Sequence record: ON529858.1
Strand: one strand, 5' to 3'
Length of the DNA: 64,000 nt
Under the pieces are notes generated by a model. The model was not told the DNA's origin. It was given only the letters and a program-made list of their open reading frames with translations, and did no database searches. Positions 40 through 49,663 of this stretch are shown in pieces (position 1 is the first letter of the stretch; the number at the start of each line of letters is the position of its first letter). A program made the position numbers and the translations under genes.

Positions 40-1878
40 ATGGTCGCAATCTTTGCCGACTCCAACCGCGCGCGTATGCGCTACATCAAGGAATCCGACG
101 TCGCCTGGGGTGTGACCCCCGCGTCGGGCCGTGCGCGCGAACTGCGCTTCACGTCGTCCTCCATCAACGCCCAGAAGAACACCACGGTTTCCGAGGAAAT
201 CCGTGCTGACCGCATGGTGTCGGAAAACGTCGAAGTCGGCGCGAACACGACCGGCGAAGTCGGCATCGAGTTCTCGGCCGGCTCGCACGACGACTTCATG
301 GAGTCGTTCATGTTCGGCGCCTGGACCCGTCCGATGACCTTCGACTCGATCGAAGGCCCGTCGCTCGAATGGGGCGCCGCCGACACCCTCTACGTCAAGG
401 GCAAGGACGTCACCGACCTGTTCGACGCCGGCAAGCGCATCCGCACCCACGGGTTCGGCCTGCCCGCCAACAACGACTATTTCGAGATCGACACGATCAC
501 CTTCAACGCCGGCTCGAACCGGACCGAGATCGTGGTCACCGTCGCCTCGGCTGAACTGGAACGCGGTTCGTCCTACACCGCCCTGTTCGACGCCAACGAC
601 GTCATCGTCCTGAAGAACGAAGACATCCGCGCGGGCACCGCCGGCGCCTCGACGTTCGACTCGAACGGCACGGACGCCTTCGCCGCCGCCATCGCCGCCG
701 GCCAACTGGTCGCCGGTCAAAAGGTCTGGGTCGAAGGCCTGGGCTACGGCGTCGGCACCGTCACGATCACCACCGCTCCGCCCGTCGCCGGCGCTCGCGT
801 CACCGTCTTCGACGGCGTCAAGACCGTGATCTTCCAGTGGGGCGGTTCCGCTCCGCAGAACGTCACGATCGTGCCGATCGGCGCGAACCTGACGGCCTCG
901 GCCGCCAACCTCGCCGCCGCGATCAACACCAAGCGCGTGCGTGGTCTGCTCAACGTCTCGGCCACGTCCGCCGTCGGCGCCGTGACCCTGAAGAACCTGA
1001 ACCGCATCGGCGGCTCGATCGCCGAAACCGTCGCCGACGCCAACGTCGCCGTCGTGACCTTCGCTGATGGCGACGCCACCCTGGGCGGCGTCTACACCAT
1101 CGAGTCCGCGACCGACGACGTCCTCACGGTCTCGCCGGCTCCGGCCACCAACGCCAACGCCGGCACGCTCGGCGTGACCATCAAGGGCTCCATGCTTCGG
1201 AACCCCGGCAACCCGGACGACATCGTCCCGCAGTCGTTCACGATCGAAACGGCTCAGGAAGACGTCGACCAGTTCTTCATCGCCGATGGTCTGCGCGTGG
1301 GCTCCTTCGCCTTCAACGTCGCCGCCAACTCGATCCTGACCGGCTCGTATTCGTTCCAGGGCCGGGCCACCACCCGCCAGGGTTCGACCAAGCTGGGTGA
1401 CGATCTCGCCTACACGACCCTGCCGACGACCGCCACGCCTGTCGCCAACGCGACCGTGAACGTCGGTCAGATCGTCATGAACGGCGAAGAACTGTCGACC
1501 GCCCTCCAGTCGATCACGCTGAACGGCAACAACAACCTGCGCGACCAGAACGCGGTTGGCTACAAGTTCCCCGCCGGCATCGGCGCGGGCCGCATGGAGA
1601 TCACCGGTTCGCTGGTGGCCTACTTCGCCAACGGCGACCTGTGGGACAAGTTCATCGAGCACCAGACGGTGTCGGTGGCCTTCCGCCTCCAGGACGTCAA
1701 GGGTCACCGCTACGAGTTCACGATCCCGGCCGCCAACTTCGGCACCGACACCGTGAACCCCGCCGGCGGCAACCAGGACATCATGGAGAACCTGGAGTTC
1801 ATGGCGAAGCGTGACCCGGTCACGGAATGCCAAATCCAGATCGACCGCTTCTCCTGCGTTCTGCCGACCACCGCCTAA
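40..1878 (+). CDS. Major tail tube protein with internal beta-rich (Ig-like) insertion
   Basis: 612-aa ORF with phage codon bias; N- and C-terminal parts resemble tail tube proteins (ELRFTSSSI...EEIRADRM; GRMEITGSLVAYF); lies directly upstream of the chaperone and tape measure genes. Confidence 0.8.
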   Translation: MVAIFADSNRARMRYIKESDVAWGVTPASGRARELRFTSSSINAQKNTTVSEEIRADRMVSENVEVGANTTGEVGIEFSAGSHDDFMESFMFGAWTRPMTFDSIEGPSLEWGAADTLYVKGKDVTDLFDAGKRIRTHGFGLPANNDYFEIDTITFNAGSNRTEIVVTVASAELERGSSYTALFDANDVIVLKNEDIRAGTAGASTFDSNGTDAFAAAIAAGQLVAGQKVWVEGLGYGVGTVTITTAPPVAGARVTVFDGVKTVIFQWGGSAPQNVTIVPIGANLTASAANLAAAINTKRVRGLLNVSATSAVGAVTLKNLNRIGGSIAETVADANVAVVTFADGDATLGGVYTIESATDDVLTVSPAPATNANAGTLGVTIKGSMLRNPGNPDDIVPQSFTIETAQEDVDQFFIADGLRVGSFAFNVAANSILTGSYSFQGRATTRQGSTKLGDDLAYTTLPTTATPVANATVNVGQIVMNGEELSTALQSITLNGNNNLRDQNAVGYKFPAGIGAGRMEITGSLVAYFANGDLWDKFIEHQTVSVAFRLQDVKGHRYEFTIPAANFGTDTVNPAGGNQDIMENLEFMAKRDPVTECQIQIDRFSCVLPTTA

Positions 1879-2939: not shown

Positions 2940-5900
2940 ATGACCGAACAAACCAGCTTCAAGATCGACTCCAAGGGGGCTCAGCGCGACCTAGACGCGC
3001 TGGCCTCCGCACTCGATCGCGCCGCCGGCGCCGCTGGTCGGATGGACCGGGACTTCGCCAAGGCGGCGCAGTCGGCCGACAAGAACCTCAAGACCGCGTC
3101 GCGCGCGATGGAGCGCTACGCCCAGATCGCGACCCTGCTGTCGCGCATCAAGTTCGCCGGCGACGGCGCAGGCCAGATCGCCAAGTTCGGTCAGGCCCTG
3201 GACTCGCTTGGCAAGGCTCGCTCGATCAAGCCTGAAACCATCAAGGGCTTCGTCAACCTCATCGACGTCGCCGCCCGCGCTCAGCGCATCGCCTTCAATC
3301 CCGCTTTCGGCAACTCGATCCGCGACATCGCCTCGGCGATGGACTCGCTCGGCCGCGCGCGCCCGCTGCGCGACGGGACCCTGAAGTCGTTCGTCCAACT
3401 CATCGACGTCACGTCCCGCGCCCAGCGCGTGCGGATCGACCCTGGCTTCGCCGCCGGGATGAAGAACATCGCCGGCGCCATGGACTTTGTCGGCCGCGCC
3501 CGCGCCATCCGCCCGCAGACCCTGAAGTCCTTCGTCGACTTCATCGAGATCGCGGCCCGCTCCCAGCGCCTGAAGTTCGACCCGTCCACGGCCCAGAGCC
3601 TGCGGGCGTTCGGCGCTGCCATCTCGCAACTGAAGCCGCCGGGCAAGGCCGCCATCGAACGTCTGGACAAGATGTTCGTCGTGCTGGCGAACGCCAAGAA
3701 GATTCCGAACGCCGCCGCGATCGCGCGTGACCTGGACATGGTCGCCGCCGCCGCCGGCCGCGCCTCCAACGCCCTCGGCGCCCTGCCCGCTCGTATGCGC
3801 AGCGCTGGCGGCGGTGGCGGCGGACGTGCGTTCCAAGAGACGGCCGCAGGCGCGAACGCCGCGACCAAGGGCTTCTCCAACTACGCCTCCGGCGCCGAGA
3901 AGGCCGGCAAGGGGACCTACACCCTGGGCGAGCGCCTGCGCGGTCTGAACCACCGGTTCTCGATCGCCTATCAGGCCGGCACCCTGTTCACCTCCATGTT
4001 CGCCTCCTTCACGCTGGGCGGGTTCATCAAGGGCATCTTCGATGCCTCGATCAACCTCGCGAAGCTGGAGAAGTCCATGACCTTCGCGACGCGCTCGACG
4101 GAGGCCGGTCACCAAGCGACCATGCGCTTCATCGGCGCCGCCCAGGAAATGGGTCTCAGCCTGAACTCGGTCTCCGAGTCGTTCGGCCGCTTCTCGATCT
4201 CGTCGGGCGCCGCCGGCATGTCGCAGGCTGAGTCGTCGGAAGTCTTCATGTCCGTCGCCCGCTCGCTGCAAGTCGTCGGCGCGTCCGCCCAGCAGACCGA
4301 ATACGCGATGTATGGTCTGACGCAGATGATTCAGAAGGGCAAGGTTTCGTCCGAAGAGTTCAACCGTCAGATCGGTGAACAAATCCCCGGTAACGCCACG
4401 GCCGGCGCCATGGCGATGTCCAAGATTCTCGGCCGCAAGGTCGAACTCGCCGAGTTCTTCGACATGATGCGCAAGGGGCAAATCATGTCGAAGGAGTTCT
4501 CGATCGAGTGGGCGCGCGCCCTGAACTCGATGTTCGCTCCCATGCAGGGGATGCTCCAGAACCGTCCTGACCTCGCCGTCAACCGCCTGAAGAACGCCTT
4601 CACGATCTTCCAGCAGGAGATCGGCAAGAACCGCTTCATGACCGAGATCGGCGTCCAACTGAACCGCCTCGCGGGTCTGTTCGGCAAGGTCGAGAACGGC
4701 GTCTTCAAGCTGCATGACCCGGTCCGGGAACTTGCCAAGCAACTCGGCCACAACCTCGCCAACGGCGTGCGTGTGATCGGTGACGCCCTGGTCTGGGCGT
4801 TCGAGAACATGGACAAGCTGATCCTGGCCGGCAAGGGCATGGCTGCTCTCCTGGTCGGCTCGACCTTCTTCTCCTGGGGCAAGAGCGCGATCGAGGCCGC
4901 CGGCAAGATCATGCTGATGGTCGGCGCCATGCGCGCCGCCAAGGTTGAAGCCGCCGCGACCGCCACGGCGAAGACGGTCCAGGCCGCCGCCACCACGCCC
5001 GGCATCGTCGGCGCGGGTGCGTCGACGGCTGACATCATCGCCCAACGCAACATGCGCGGCATCGCGCCCACGGCGGTCGGCGGCTCTGTGACCACCGCTC
5101 AGAAGTTCGCCTCGAACAACGAATACGGCGTCAACACCTTCGCTCGCCCGACCGGTCCCGACGGCAAGCCCGCCCAAGGCATGGGCGCACGTCAGTTCGG
5201 CCGCCGCGCCCTGTCGCCCGCGCTCGCCAATGCCGGCGCGGCTTCCGCTGCTGCCTCGGGCGCAGGCCAGATCGCATCCGCCGGCACCGCCGCTGCGGGC
5301 GCGGCTCCCAAGGTGAACATGCTGAGCGGCGCCATCCGTGGCCTGGGTCTGGCGTTCGGCGCCTTCTCGCTCCTGGCGATCGCCGCCGTCGCAACCCTGG
5401 CCGTCTTCTCGGACAAGCAGGTCGAAGTCGCCGGCAAGTCCGTCAAGGGCGGAGACATTATGATGGGCTCGCTCGACGTCGTCGGGAAGTCCTTCAAGGA
5501 TTGGGCCAAGACCACCGGCGACAGCATCACCGGCGTGTCGGGTTCGTTCGACTGGCTGGACAAGAACGCCGGCGAACTGATGGTCGGCCTGATGGCGGCT
5601 GTCATCACGATCGGCAAGACCTTCCTGACCGTCTTCACCTCGATCGGCAAGATCATCGGCACCGTCGTCGCCAACATGATCATCCCGGCGATGATGGGTA
5701 TCTCCAAGCTGGCGAAGGGCGACATCATCGGCGCCGCCGAGACCTTCCTGAAGGAATCCTTCACCGGCAACGCCAGCCGCATGATGGAAACCGCCCGCGA
5801 GATCGGTGGAGACTTCGTCGCCGCCGCCGACTACGAAGGCACCGCCACCTCGATTCGCACTGCCGCGATCGGGCGCGCCACCGACCGCAACGCCGCGAAC

Positions 5901-46424: not shown

Positions 46425-47174
46425 TCAGCGGGCGTAGCGAAGTTCGGGCGCGATGACGGAGATGCCGGTAGCCGGATCGACCTTGGCCCAATCCCAGACG
46501 AACCAAGCGTAGGGGAACCGGGGCGAGCCGCTGCTGTCGGCGATCCAGCGCGGGCGATGCCGCAGCGTGATCTTCATGGCGAAGGCCGGGTGGTCGAAGA
46601 GGTCGGACCGGCTCTTGGCGCAGTCCCATTCGTGGCGGCAGAGCACGGCCACGAGACCGGCCTGGGGCTGCATCAGGTGCAGCGCGTGCCGGGTGATCGC
46701 CTCGGCGTCCTTGCCGTAGGGCGGGTTGGTGATGATCGCCGACGGCAGTTCGCCGTTGTTGCCGGGGCGGAGCGCGGCGAACTCGCTCAGGGTGATGGGA
46801 AATGCGCCGGCGGTCTCGACGTCGACGTTGTCGACGGCCCACTGGAGAAAGGCTTCGTCGCAGGCGGCGGTGTCGTCGTCGCGATAGATGCGCAGGAAGT
46901 CGATCAGCTTGTCCGAAACGAACCCATTCTGGGAGACGATGTCCGACGTGTAGACATCGCGCACCAACTCGCGCAGGGGCTCCGACACCGCACCGTCGCC
47001 GACGCAGGGCTCCCAGGCGATGTAGCCGGCGAGGTCGTCGCCGATGATCTGGAACAGACCGTCCAGCGCCGGGCGCGGGGTGGCGTAGAAGTCGTTGGCG
47101 ATGCGCTCGTAACCGGAGGTGCCGAGAGCGGACGGGTCCTTGCGGGGCGCGTCGGAGAGGGGTGCGGGGTTCAT
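46425..47174 (-). CDS. Amino (N6-adenine/N4-cytosine) DNA methyltransferase
   Basis: DFYATP, WEPCVGDG, IITNPPY. Confidence 0.82.
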   Translation of the reverse strand: MNPAPLSDAPRKDPSALGTSGYERIANDFYATPRPALDGLFQIIGDDLAGYIAWEPCVGDGAVSEPLRELVRDVYTSDIVSQNGFVSDKLIDFLRIYRDDDTAACDEAFLQWAVDNVDVETAGAFPITLSEFAALRPGNNGELPSAIITNPPYGKDAEAITRHALHLMQPQAGLVAVLCRHEWDCAKSRSDLFDHPAFAMKITLRHRPRWIADSSGSPRFPYAWFVWDWAKVDPATGISVIAPELRYAR

Positions 47175-47206
47175 GGTTAACGTCTGTCTCACACTCGGAG
47201 AAGGAC

Positions 47207-47222
47207 GTCAAGATTCACGACG
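47207..47222 (-). promoter_or_regulatory. Phage promoter motif copy
   Basis: Minus strand CGTCG-TGAATC-TTGAC. Confidence 0.72.
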
Positions 47223-47243
47223 TTCGAGGTCAAGAATCCTGCA

Positions 47244-47272
47244 TTGACGGCGTGAAACGCCCGATCTATAAG
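47244..47272 (+). promoter_or_regulatory. sigma70 promoter of the + strand RNA
   Basis: TTGACG-N17-TATAAG. Confidence 0.75.
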
Positions 47273-47277
47273 GGTGG

Positions 47278-47755
47278 CTCGAACCAGGGCGGTCCTGCTT
47301 CGCCATCCCCCAGCAGCGCAGCGCCGGGGTGGATCATCCGCCCTGGGGGAGACTGCCGACGGCGTCTAGCAGGACGTTGGGAGCGACAACAGGCTACGTC
47401 CGGAACCCCGCTGCGCCGTTGGGGGTGACCTTCCAAGCCGAAGTAGGAGTGGAGCAAAGCCTGGACCGGCCCTCCACGGTCGTCGCACGGGGCGGGGCCT
47501 ACAGACCGTGATGAGGCGAACGCCGGCCGAGACTAGGCAACCAGGGCGTGACAGCAGGCAGAGACCGCGCTATCCTTCATCGTTCGCAGAACGCTAGGCG
47601 TAGACACCGGACGGTGTCGGTAGCAGATCGGTGGTGGAGACGTCCGCTCCCACCGGCAACCCATCCCGAGGGTGGCAACGAGACGGATGACGCGGCGCCG
47701 GCCGAGAGAAGACGATGGCGATGAGAGCCCTGCTGGCGCGCCGGCAGGGCTTTTT
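47278..47755 (+). ncRNA. Candidate ~480-nt pseudoknotted structured RNA
   Basis: Promoter-to-terminator unit with no codon-biased ORF; several perfect interleaved helices. Confidence 0.7.
47726..47755 (+). terminator. Intrinsic terminator
   Basis: AGCCCTGCTGG-CGCG-CCGGCAGGGCT then TTTT. Confidence 0.8.
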
Positions 47756-47760
47756 CATGG

Positions 47761-47798
47761 AAAAGGCCATTTTCACCGCACAGTGAAAATGGCCTTTT
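47761..47798. terminator. Perfect 16-bp inverted repeat between convergent RNA units
   Basis: AAAAGGCCATTTTCAC-CGCACA-GTGAAAATGGCCTTTT. Confidence 0.7.
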
Positions 47799-47807
47799 GA
47801 GTGAAAC

Positions 47808-47894
47808 TGGAGGAATGTGGCGGAATCGAACCGCCGGGTCTCTCGACCATCACAGATTTGCAGTCTGTGGCCTTACCACTCGGTCCAACATCCC
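47808..47894 (-). tRNA. tRNA with GCA (Cys) anticodon and long variable arm
   Basis: GGGAUGU/ACAUUCC acceptor, ACAGA-CUGCAAA-UCUGU, GGCGG-UUCGAUU-CCGCC, U73, encoded CCA. Confidence 0.88.
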
Positions 47895-47931: not shown

Positions 47932-48096
47932 TTCCGGTAACCAGGGGAGTGCCGTAGCTGTCCCAAGGTGCTGAGCGACTTGTGCGAGGGCGATCCGCCA
48001 ACCTCACCAGACCCCGGCGCCGGGTTCTGGACCTCACGTCGGCCACCTCGAACTCCGAAGAGGGGGAAGCCGATGAGGGCATGTGGGTCCCAGGGT

Positions 48097-48165: not shown

Positions 48166-49025
48166 GCCTTCATAAATAGGAAACGCCGCCGAACCCGAGG
48201 GCGCGGCGGCGTGTCTTTCGATGCCCTGAGACGAAGCGGGCTATCCAGAGAGGCTTCCGGGATTATCGTTTCCCCAGGTCGTCCAGAAGGCTTTCACCTC
48301 CCTACCCCTCGAATGACGCTTTGTTTAACCGGGTGTCCCCGGAGGAAGTTGCTGCGCTCCCTGTCGTATTGGACCACTCACCTGCGTCCCCTTCCGAATA
48401 CAGCCGCTAAGCCGCACAAGGAAGTCTGTTCAAGCGGACCGTGCGCCTTGCAGGGCTAACACGGCGACCTTACGTCCGAAGACCAAGGCCAGGAGTCATC
48501 TGTCGTCCAACACCGGCAAGACTTTTGCTTCTTGACAAAAATGCCTGTTTGACACGGGCTACCTACCCGTCGAGGTTTATTCCAAGGACACGCTTACCTG
48601 GAGGTCCATCGGCTTTTGACCGACAAAATGCTCCGCGCCCCAATGTGAACCGAACAGCCCACGGTCTACAGGACGCCGCCGAGTTTGACCCCGACTTAAC
48701 CCTGGAGACTGGACGCCGCACTTAACCCATGTCGTGGGTCTCGCACTAAACGCCCTACGCCTTGGACCTCGATGGTTCTCTCGGAGGATTCCGGCAGCGG
48801 GAGCATCCCTGCTCTCACCTGAACCCATGGTGTTGCCATGAGCCTTGACCGGCCGAGGTAGCCCCTATCCCCCATACGCCTCCATCTCTGGAGCCATCTG
48901 AGGGACACCCTGGTAGGGTGGGTCCCGACGCTTGCTTCGAATGACCGACTTGCGCCGGCGCCGGACTGGAAAGTTCCGACTTCACCACCGGTTGCCCGGC
49001 GGCCTCGCTCCGAAGCGATGAGTGA

Positions 49026-49093: not shown

Positions 49094-49122
49094 CTTTTCT
49101 TGCTGCCTGGGTGTCAGGATTC

Positions 49123-49151
49123 TTGACACAGGGTGTCAACGAGCATATAGG
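49123..49151 (+). promoter_or_regulatory. sigma70 promoter of the tmRNA-tRNA operon
   Basis: TTGACA-N17-TATAGG. Confidence 0.8.
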
Positions 49152-49156
49152 GGAGA

Positions 49157-49570
49157 GATCGAGCAGATGCCTTCGGGCTGAAAACTGTGACATGAAAGAC
49201 GGGCCGGACTCGGGTGCGATTCCCGACGGCTCCACCAAAAGCGCCCATCCGGCATGTCAGACCTTCGGGTCGGTGTCAGGGGATGAGGCTAGTCCCCGGC
49301 GAAGAGGTGTCGTAGAACGCGCCCTCTACCGAAAGCCAGGGTGGACGCTTTTGTTGGGGCCGACCAGATTCGACGGGCGTTGGTAGTGAAGTGGGTTCGA
49401 TGGGTGGCTCCCCCAGCCAAGCACTGACAAATGTCGCTGCAAATGACAACGCTCCGTTCGCGGTGCGTGAAGCCATCGCCGCCTAATAAGCGGTAGAGGG
49501 GTGTCCGGAGGGGCGCCTGTCACAAAAAGCCACTCGCCTCCGGGCCGGTGGTTCCCTCCACCACCAGTTT
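49157..49570 (+). ncRNA. ssrA: Circularly permuted two-piece tmRNA (3' boundary approximate)
   Basis: Acceptor piece ending CUCGGG-UGCGAUU-CCCGA-CGGCUCC-A-CCA (49237) precedes the coding piece starting GGGGCCG (49356); G3-U70 pair; tag ORF ANDNAPFAVREAIAA* at 49439-49486; inter-piece pairing UGUGACA/UGUCACA. Confidence 0.93.
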
Positions 49571-49663
49571 CCAAAGGTGGGCTGCAACCTCCTACGTCGT
49601 GCTTCTCGGAGGCGACGGGTGGACCGCACCAAGCGCGGTCCTGACAAAGCGCAGCACATTTAT

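Follow-up and report, generated by a model that had tools for sequence, protein, structure and literature searches.

Phage RNA islands, composed of transfer RNAs (tRNAs), transfer-messenger RNA (tmRNA), GOLLD RNA, and Y RNAs, are increasingly viewed as hubs of uncharted biology. The species 1 and 2 RNAs from the tRNA clusters of phage T4 and the RNase III sites of phage T7 are untranslated structured RNAs or spacers freed by host nucleases, and ribozymes similar to that of hepatitis delta virus (HDV) are known to occur beside phage tRNAs. The put RNAs of phage HK022 curb downstream termination of transcription through the zinc-binding domain of the RNA polymerase subunit β′. They are phage-encoded, cis-acting RNAs of about 50–70 nucleotides, which form two adjacent stem-loops, are present in few copies, and do not need a particular gene downstream (PMC9378689). 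Here, we describe an RNA locus at positions 47278–47755 of a 64,000-nucleotide stretch of DNA, referred to as the window, from the 207 kb record ON529858.1 of Brevundimonas phage vB_BgoS-Bajun (Dolichocephalovirinae). Positions 47230–47760 of the window correspond with 100% identity to positions 190491–191021 of the record.

The locus is an unannotated gene for a non-coding, structured, and strand-specific RNA of a phiCbK-like phage. It probably encodes two small structured RNAs and not one knotted molecule of 480 nucleotides. The locus contains a two-hairpin element that appears to be an undescribed, widespread phage RNA motif absent from Rfam 15. The element may be a cis-acting signal for RNA punctuation, processing, and end protection, in which case the Bajun precursor would yield two stable small RNAs. 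GOLLD and ROOL RNAs occur in the same kind of neighbourhood, and in both Bajun and phiCbK a GOLLD RNA is located about 500 nucleotides from the locus on the other strand. However, the locus does not match the models of these families; the Bajun RNA gene is far smaller than they are, is built of modules, and differs even between closely related lineages.

A conserved two-hairpin RNA element

The element is about 45–65 nucleotides long and consists, in this order, of the sequence (U)GAnGCGA, helix P1 (ACGCC, a variable loop, and GGCGU), the trinucleotide GAC, and helix P2 with a loop containing AGAG. The compact copies have about 45–55 nucleotides. The covariance model R1, built from 24 copies, identifies 74 copies with E < 1e-3 in the phage and metagenome DNA gathered for comparison. 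Two-sided changes affect all five base pairs of P2 (97 cells), a value that none of 500 shuffles reached; controls with slid pairing collapsed. P1 is paired in 99.7% of cases and nearly invariant, with the rare compensated variants ACGUC/GACGU and ACGAC/GUCGU. The P1 of one Kikimora copy is AAGCC/GGCUU, and between the diverged copies of Rogue and BL10 the helix changes from AGGCC/GGCCU to GGACU/GGUCC, which includes a U·G pair. The dinucleotide GA is present on both sides of P1, where tandem sheared G·A pairs may form. In total, about 30 nucleotides, located in the junctions, the helix flanked by the putative tandem G·A pairs, and the hairpin loop, are nearly invariant. A variable hairpin, P0, usually ends 1–5 nucleotides before GCGA, and the 12 nucleotides following P2 are poor in G, with an A+U fraction of 0.47 compared to 0.37 in the background.

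The G·U pairs and the fixed orientation of the element relative to the flanking RNAs indicate that it is an RNA and not a DNA site. The interpretation of the element as an operator or another inverted-repeat DNA site was rejected, as the length of the P1 loop ranges from 8 to at least 26 nucleotides. A sigma-70 promoter with GTGAC as the −35 hexamer was likewise rejected, given that copies of the element end 6–10 nucleotides before mature tRNA 5′ ends, P2 covaries, and the G·U pairs are strand-specific. No Rfam 15 family matches the element in the window, in the related loci, or in the compact copies, at either the gathering score or permissive E-values, and searches of the literature by sequence words and by topic returned no description of it.

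The complete Bajun copy of the element (47510–47575, + strand) scores 40.9 bits with R1, with an E-value of about 1e-12. It contains GCGA at 47516–19, P1 formed of ACGCC (47520–24) and GGCGU (47545–49), GAC at 47550–52, and P2 at about 47554–47570 with the loop CAGAGA. Thus, the copy has all of the defining features of the element, although its P2 is imperfect. In calibration, chance matches preselected for the 21 fixed bases of a search pattern reached at most 37 bits and clear members at least 46 bits. Because the score of the Bajun copy falls between these values, its membership also rests on the obvious homology to the copies from phiCbK, Colossus, and Kikimora. Elsewhere in the window, R1 has a weak match at 1147–1193 (+ strand; 19 bits, E about 2e-4), inside a 612-residue open reading frame (40–1878), with words similar to P1 and no P2; it is probably due to chance.

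The element is distributed beyond the phiCbK-like phages. A fixed search pattern with 21 fixed bases retrieved 45 stretches of viral contigs from IMG/VR, mostly from phages unrelated to the phiCbK-like ones. Metagenome-assembled genomes of several proteobacterial groups contain real copies amid many chance matches in G+C-rich coding DNA; in the scan of the genome collection, at least about 11 of the 100 stretches scored with R1 among the matches listed are real copies. Hosts of phages carrying the element include Caulobacter, Brevundimonas, Ralstonia, Pseudomonas, Rhizobium, and Rhodobacter, and thus belong to alpha-, beta-, and gamma-proteobacteria. Two tandem copies are present in the 10-kb region of Ralstonia phage GP4 that was examined, whereas the temperate Rhizobium phage RHph_N2 has a single copy in its 44 kb, located in the early-left operon. 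The element was also found in the cultured Rhodobacter phage RcCWillis. A blastn search with a compact copy did not find a match in Escherichia coli genomes or PLSDB plasmids.

Copies of the element are often positioned at RNA or gene boundaries. Ten of 68 copies adjoin a tRNA on the same strand: seven end about 6–10 nucleotides before its 5′ end (tRNA-Cys in Colossus, CcrPW, and a viral contig; tRNA-Met, tRNA-Asn, or tRNA-Ala elsewhere), and three start about 4 nucleotides past the 3′ end of tRNA-Met. The compact copies are located 7–42 nucleotides after the upstream open reading frame and 22–34 nucleotides before a ribosome-binding site and start codon. The genes that follow them are mutually unrelated and encode a DNA polymerase, a replication initiator, RusA, or small proteins of no assigned function, with a scaffold-like gene further out. 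In Pseudomonas phage Itty13, the element is inside an untranslated gap of about 880 nucleotides that contains a tRNA-like structure. The gap region (positions 4560–5840 of stretch L194) lacks credible genes, and resembles a phage RNA island. The tRNA-like structure has a greatly enlarged anticodon-arm region at about 5074–5170, and the words CUGCAUCGGA and CCCAUGCAG are repeated in the gap.

The Bajun RNA gene and its modular relatives

Outside of Bajun, blastn detects only about 60 nucleotides of the interval (47511–47577), which recur in 15 further Dolichocephalovirinae records. We compared the syntenic regions of phiCbK, Magneto, Rogue, BL10, Colossus, CcrPW, Kikimora, Bambus, and Domovoi. 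The related loci are arrays of one to four structured modules in differing combinations, in which the element persists while the module content changes. Each module terminates in a copy of the element, and in Bajun, Kikimora, Bambus, and Domovoi the last copy is fused with an intrinsic terminator. In the last unit of the Kikimora array, P1 is altered to CGUC/GACG. In Shapirovirus, Poindextervirus, and Colossusvirus, the locus occupies the same syntenic place, between the genes for a DNA methylase and tRNA-Cys. It has been relocated in the large Brevundimonas phages, where it is still positioned beside tRNA-Cys, tmRNA, and tRNA-Met.

The Bajun gene has the same organization. A sigma-70-type promoter is formed of TTGACG (47244–49), a 17-nucleotide spacer, and TATAAG (47267–72), with a predicted transcription start near 47279. 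phiCbK, Magneto, Rogue, and BL10 retain the block CATTGAC and its spacing. The promoter was read from the sequence (47244–47272, + strand); the promoter scan did not list it, because its rule demands T at position 6 of the hexamer. Module A (47279–47509, + strand) is predicted by folding to be a structured 5′ domain that includes the helical domain 47307–47427 and hairpin P0. About 20 nucleotides of its 5′ end (GGGCGGUCCUGCU) recur in phiCbK, Rogue, and Colossus. The complete copy of the element follows. Module B (47577–47686, + strand) is a second structured domain with the hairpins GACACC/GGTGTC (47603–18) and CGGUGG...CCACCG. Its homologue in Colossus and CcrPW is their second module, with which it shares the blocks CGUAGACACC, GGUGGUG, and CCACC. 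The only promoter-like site found by the scan (GTGACA, 17 nucleotides, TATCCT; 47548–47576, + strand) overlaps P2 and may be an internal promoter of module B. Its assignment is uncertain, because the Colossus homologue has conserved module B sequence inside the would-be spacer. Promoter-like sites of the form TTGAC-N17-hexamer follow the element in Kikimora and Bambus.

Module B is followed by a putative degenerate terminal copy of the element (47687–47726, + strand), which contains AUGACGCGG, a P1 formed of CGCC (47696–99) and GGCG (47717–20), and a loop that begins with GGCCGAGA. R1 at E ≤ 1 does not detect this copy. Its counterparts at the array ends of Kikimora, Bambus, and Domovoi nonetheless have UGAnGCGn, CGCC...GGCG, and the GGCCGAGA loop in common with it. 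The place of P2 is occupied by the intrinsic terminator (47727–47755, + strand), identified from the sequence and the minimum-free-energy fold. It consists of a 10-base-pair G+C-rich hairpin (47727–47750) with the loop CGCG, followed by UUUUU; a simple terminator scan left it unflagged. A perfect hairpin at 47761–47800 (AAAAGGCCAUUUUCAC...GUGAAAAUGGCCUUUU), located between this terminator and the converging 3′ end of tRNA-Cys, resembles a bidirectional terminator.

The region 47278–47757 is without annotation in the Bajun record. It is flanked by a DNA methylase gene (46425–47192, − strand) and tRNA-Cys (47808–47894, − strand), and the surrounding 3 kb or so form an RNA island with tRNA-Cys, a GOLLD-like RNA, a permuted tmRNA (about 49119–49577), and two tRNA-Met genes. 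The G+C content of the Bajun DNA here is 66%. The interval contains no stop-free stretch longer than 85 codons, and the phiCbK open reading frame gp128 resembles the window only over 27 codons that overlie the conserved element; the short stop-free stretches and the confinement of this match rule out a protein-coding function of the interval. In phiCbK, the annotated open reading frame gp128 spans the RNA array on the minus strand (stretch L002, 2588–3160), and equivalents are annotated in Karma, Magneto, Swift, and Ccr phages. The gp128-type hypothetical protein is probably not encoded by a real gene, because it lacks a Bajun counterpart outside the 27 codons over the element. The locus thus adds an unannotated RNA gene to phage RNA islands, at a place where several GenBank records list a hypothetical protein.

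The GOLLD-like RNA of Bajun (48223–48641, − strand) is located between tRNA-Cys and the tmRNA gene, and is not annotated in the record. It scores 104 bits (E 7e-28), where the curated Rfam cut-off is 150. The phiCbK counterpart (L002, 3571–4057, − strand; 165 bits) encloses a tRNA and is likewise unannotated. A block around GCCGUAGCUGU is conserved between tRNA-Cys and GOLLD in Bajun (47935–47990) and phiCbK (L002, 3380–3440), and also occurs downstream of the Colossus gene for Ro60 (stretch L181, 4630–4660).

An earlier note on this DNA had described the interval as a single, multiply pseudoknotted RNA of about 480 nucleotides, in which it recognized neither RNase P RNA nor a group I intron. 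A search of 47150–47850 with Rfam 15 bears out the second point: no family was found at the gathering score or at E ≤ 10, and therefore these two RNAs are indeed absent. The models of group II introns, GOLLD, ROOL, OLE, raiA, HEARO, 6S, signal recognition particle RNA, and tmRNA were also without a match in this region. The best weak match (20.8 bits) is to the terminator part of the unrelated small RNA ncS01. The proposed helices are all present and perfectly complementary, including helix 1 (47284–92/47338–46), helix 2 (47293–99/47368–74), helix 3 (47316–23/47409–16, extended by CCCCC/GGGGG), a closing helix (47301–07/47714–20), and the short helices GTGGAG/CTCCAC, ACGGTC/GACCGT, and GACACC/GGTGTC. 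ACGGTC/GACCGT is hairpin P0 (47476–81/47504–09), immediately before the conserved element. Hairpin GACACC/GGTGTC is present in Bajun but is not kept in the module B homologues of Colossus and CcrPW. Helices 1 and 2 had been described as crossing helix 3; the crossing exists, but all three helices cross one another.

It is improbable that these helices build one ornate RNA of about 480 nucleotides, such as a large ribozyme or a GOLLD-like assembly, closed by 47301–07/47714–20. The whole-region folding z-score of −2.27 for the plus strand, compared to −0.74 for the minus strand, agrees with such an RNA, as does the GOLLD-like RNA next door. The numbers of stems with 6–8 base pairs are modestly above those of shuffled sequences (fraction of shuffles with at least the observed count 0.006–0.034). 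However, a perfect 9-base-pair stem is present in 47% of dinucleotide shuffles, and the stems are not enriched relative to the rest of the genome, where about 16–17% of the other 478-nucleotide windows contain as many stems of 7 or 8 base pairs. In nested thermodynamic folding, helix 3 is the only one of the long helices to form, with a probability of about 1, and closes a thermodynamically dominant three-hairpin multibranch domain (47307–47427). Helices 1 and 2 have a probability of 0, and forcing them costs 6–14 kcal/mol. Three mutually crossing helices of 7–9 base pairs with zero-length linkers are sterically implausible. The closing helix competes for 47717–20 with the local P1 hairpin of the terminal copy (47696–99/47717–20), which is conserved at the corresponding array ends of Kikimora, Bambus, and Domovoi.

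The comparison with the relatives also bears on the model of a single molecule. The 5′ words of helices 1 and 2 are conserved, and their partners in Colossus and CcrPW occur in the same crossed order, with UCCACC/GGUGGA in place of the Bajun UCCUGC/GCAGGA. However, the partners are nested in Rogue and BL10 and weak in phiCbK, and a duplex search for them gave topologies inconsistent across lineages. The minimum-free-energy folds of homologous modules differ between lineages. A search of metagenomes through the neighbouring methylase gave only distant phages and no close relative of the Bajun RNA, so that covariation cannot judge the proposed helices. The arrays themselves, whose modules are shuffled, gained, and lost between lineages, also speak against a single molecule. 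In addition, two metagenomic relatives have a short RNA of another kind in this place: the contigs Ga0181337_1002301 (L182) and Ga0181343_1013228 (L183) from distant phiCbK-like phages contain an RNA of about 100 nucleotides (GGAGUAGCCCnCGGGG...AUCCC) at the methylase-proximal position. Because of this different RNA, the position seems to be a hot spot for the swapping of small RNA genes.

Another alternative is that the modules would be Y-RNA-like partners of the TROVE protein Ro60, with GCGAAC as its binding site. A Ro60 homologue with TROVE and vWA domains is encoded by seven large Brevundimonas phages, and in the three such regions that were examined, Kikimora, Bambus, and Domovoi, the array is directly downstream of Ro60. 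The word GGCGAACG at 47515–22 fits GNCGAAN0-1G, which was proposed as a binding word of Rsr (PMC4201824). However, the first G of the word varies among copies of the element, and the Colossus array is 23 kb from Ro60. Colossus, Kikimora, and Xanthomonas phage Olaya each have a canonical YrlA-like array just upstream of Ro60, and none of these arrays contains the element. A tblastn search with Kikimora Ro60 did not find a homologue in Bajun or the phiCbK-type phages. A T-loop hairpin (5-base-pair stem, loop UUCRAnY) is absent from 47278–47757 and occurs in the window only inside annotated tRNAs, and the tRNA-like Y domain, with a T-arm of the GGUUCGAAUCC type, an acceptor-like stem, and a D-arm, was not found at the Bajun locus. 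A Y RNA function is thus highly improbable for the modules in general, and close to excluded for Bajun. The YrlA-like arrays contain two to about six RNAs, each with a T-arm, an acceptor-like hairpin, and a D-arm (Colossus, L181 1780–2960; Kikimora, stretch L018 about 500–1030; Olaya, stretch L180 18880–19560). They are partly annotated as tRNA-Gln or tRNA-Ser, and Rfam at the gathering score reported nothing there.

A possible role in RNA punctuation

The organization of the locus is consistent with the following sequence of events. Host RNA polymerase would start near 47279 and stop at the terminator 47727–47755, producing a transcript of about 475 nucleotides, in which modules A and B are each followed by a copy of the element, complete after A, and degenerate and fused with the terminator after B. 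The element would fold during synthesis, and its nearly invariant P1, flanked by putative tandem G·A pairs, could be specifically recognized. The recognition would mark a cut site of the precursor, located either at the 5′ edge of the element or within the single-stranded, G-poor tail behind P2. Either a conserved host endonuclease would cut there, or the RNA would cleave itself. The hairpins may then shield the new ends, so that the modules, neighbouring tRNAs, or cistrons are freed as separate stable RNAs.

Punctuation is the best reading of the element because it is found at boundaries, has a G-poor tail, merges with terminators where arrays end, and is not tied to particular genes. That P1 and the junctions are so highly conserved implies that a universal host factor recognizes them specifically, or that the RNA has an intrinsic chemistry. 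Several observations weigh against this reading. Simple end protection would need fewer than about 30 conserved nucleotides. A typical phage has one or two copies per genome, as in RHph_N2 and the examined region of GP4, and therefore the element is not a general intercistronic signal. The copy in RcCWillis is antisense to both neighbouring genes. In Bajun, P2 of the complete copy deviates from perfect pairing and the second copy is too degenerate for R1. Possible promoters directly follow several copies, which would make processing needless for separating the units. Finally, no transcript or end-mapping data for these phages were found in the literature. Because of this and the one or two copies of ordinary phages, we assign the punctuation reading a probability of roughly 0.4. 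It is doubtful that the element instead belongs to a new class of RNAs that are catalytic or hijack machinery, whether as a small self-cleaving ribozyme or as a put-like RNA of unrelated fold that rides on RNA polymerase, with modules A and B as its cargo.

The polymerase-riding variant, by analogy with the put RNAs, would make the element a processive antiterminator: the nascent two-hairpin RNA would bind the transcribing host RNA polymerase and render it resistant to pausing, intrinsic terminators, and Rho, so that long untranslated RNA islands and long operons could be read through. The architecture is put-like, with two adjacent stem-loops in about 45–70 nucleotides, specificity to phages, one or two copies in ordinary genomes, and no fixed gene downstream. 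The copy of RHph_N2 in an early-left operon of a temperate phage is suitably placed, and so are those at the head of untranslated tRNA and tmRNA stretches in Colossus and CcrPW. The spread over three proteobacterial classes suits a universal partner such as RNA polymerase. However, in Bajun a terminator follows 150 nucleotides after the complete copy and is expected to be functional, since tRNA-Cys converges on it. Terminal copies are located directly on terminators, and several copies immediately follow a tRNA and are not near a promoter. Bases 18000–40751 of HK022 (22.8 kb), where put sites are expected, gave a best R1 score of 7.8 bits (E 0.23) with the filters off, which speaks against homology. 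Antitermination is thus an unlikely function of the element.

By analogy with known families, the element could also be a new small self-cleaving ribozyme that cuts at its own edge and frees the flanking tRNAs, modules, and cistrons. About 30 nearly invariant nucleotides in the junctions, the G·A-flanked helix, and the loop, combined with stems that covary or vary in length, would suit a catalytic core. Known small ribozymes share the phage or mobile context, the lack of a consistent gene association, several copies per locus, and the adjacency to tRNAs. However, no known ribozyme family (hammerhead, twister, twister-sister, pistol, hatchet, or HDV-like) was found at E ≤ 10 in the window copies or at E ≤ 5 in seven loci with compact copies. 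A hammerhead-like interpretation fails, as neither CUGA-N-GA nor GAAA is retained and what would be the third helix is a hairpin formed locally, and the nested pseudoknot of HDV-like ribozymes cannot be drawn. Neither a conserved candidate cleavage dinucleotide nor a tertiary pairing was found, the terminal copies lack GAC and the P2 loop, and the base rate of ribozymes among new motifs is low. A self-cleaving ribozyme is, for these reasons, quite unlikely. The conserved positions were also compared by hand with the hammerhead, HDV-like, group II domain 5, k-turn, and sarcin-ricin structures, and none of these accounts for all of them.

The nearly invariant helix of the element, together with its location at boundaries, suggests that it either interacts specifically with a universal host machine or is catalytic. 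In both cases, it would offer a new way to study how untranslated transcripts are cut, stabilised, or extended by phages, and with about 50 nucleotides the element is small enough for direct biochemistry.

Comparison with known phage RNAs

The put RNAs of HK022 and the element are alike in their size, the two stem-loops, action in cis in a phage, the few copies, and independence from particular genes. In contrast, they do not resemble one another in sequence or by covariance model, and the put RNAs are located just after early promoters, whereas the element is often positioned at the 3′ ends of RNA units, on terminators, and against tRNAs.

The hammerhead, twister, and HDV-like ribozymes beside phage tRNAs share with the element its compactness, conserved junctions, variable stems, multiple copies, and adjacency to tRNAs. 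However, the element does not match the Rfam ribozyme models, and the hammerhead and HDV cores cannot be fitted to it.

The YrlA Y RNAs that accompany Ro60 are similar to the locus in forming modular arrays in phage RNA islands, in the GCGAA-type word, and, in some Brevundimonas phages, in the adjacency to Ro60. In Bajun, however, neither the tRNA-like T and D domain nor Ro60 is present.

The stable RNAs and processing hairpins of T4 and T7 are like the element in lying among phage tRNAs or between cistrons. To our knowledge, elements of this type do not share conserved sequence across distant phages, whereas about 30 nucleotides of the two-hairpin element are kept across phages of three proteobacterial classes.

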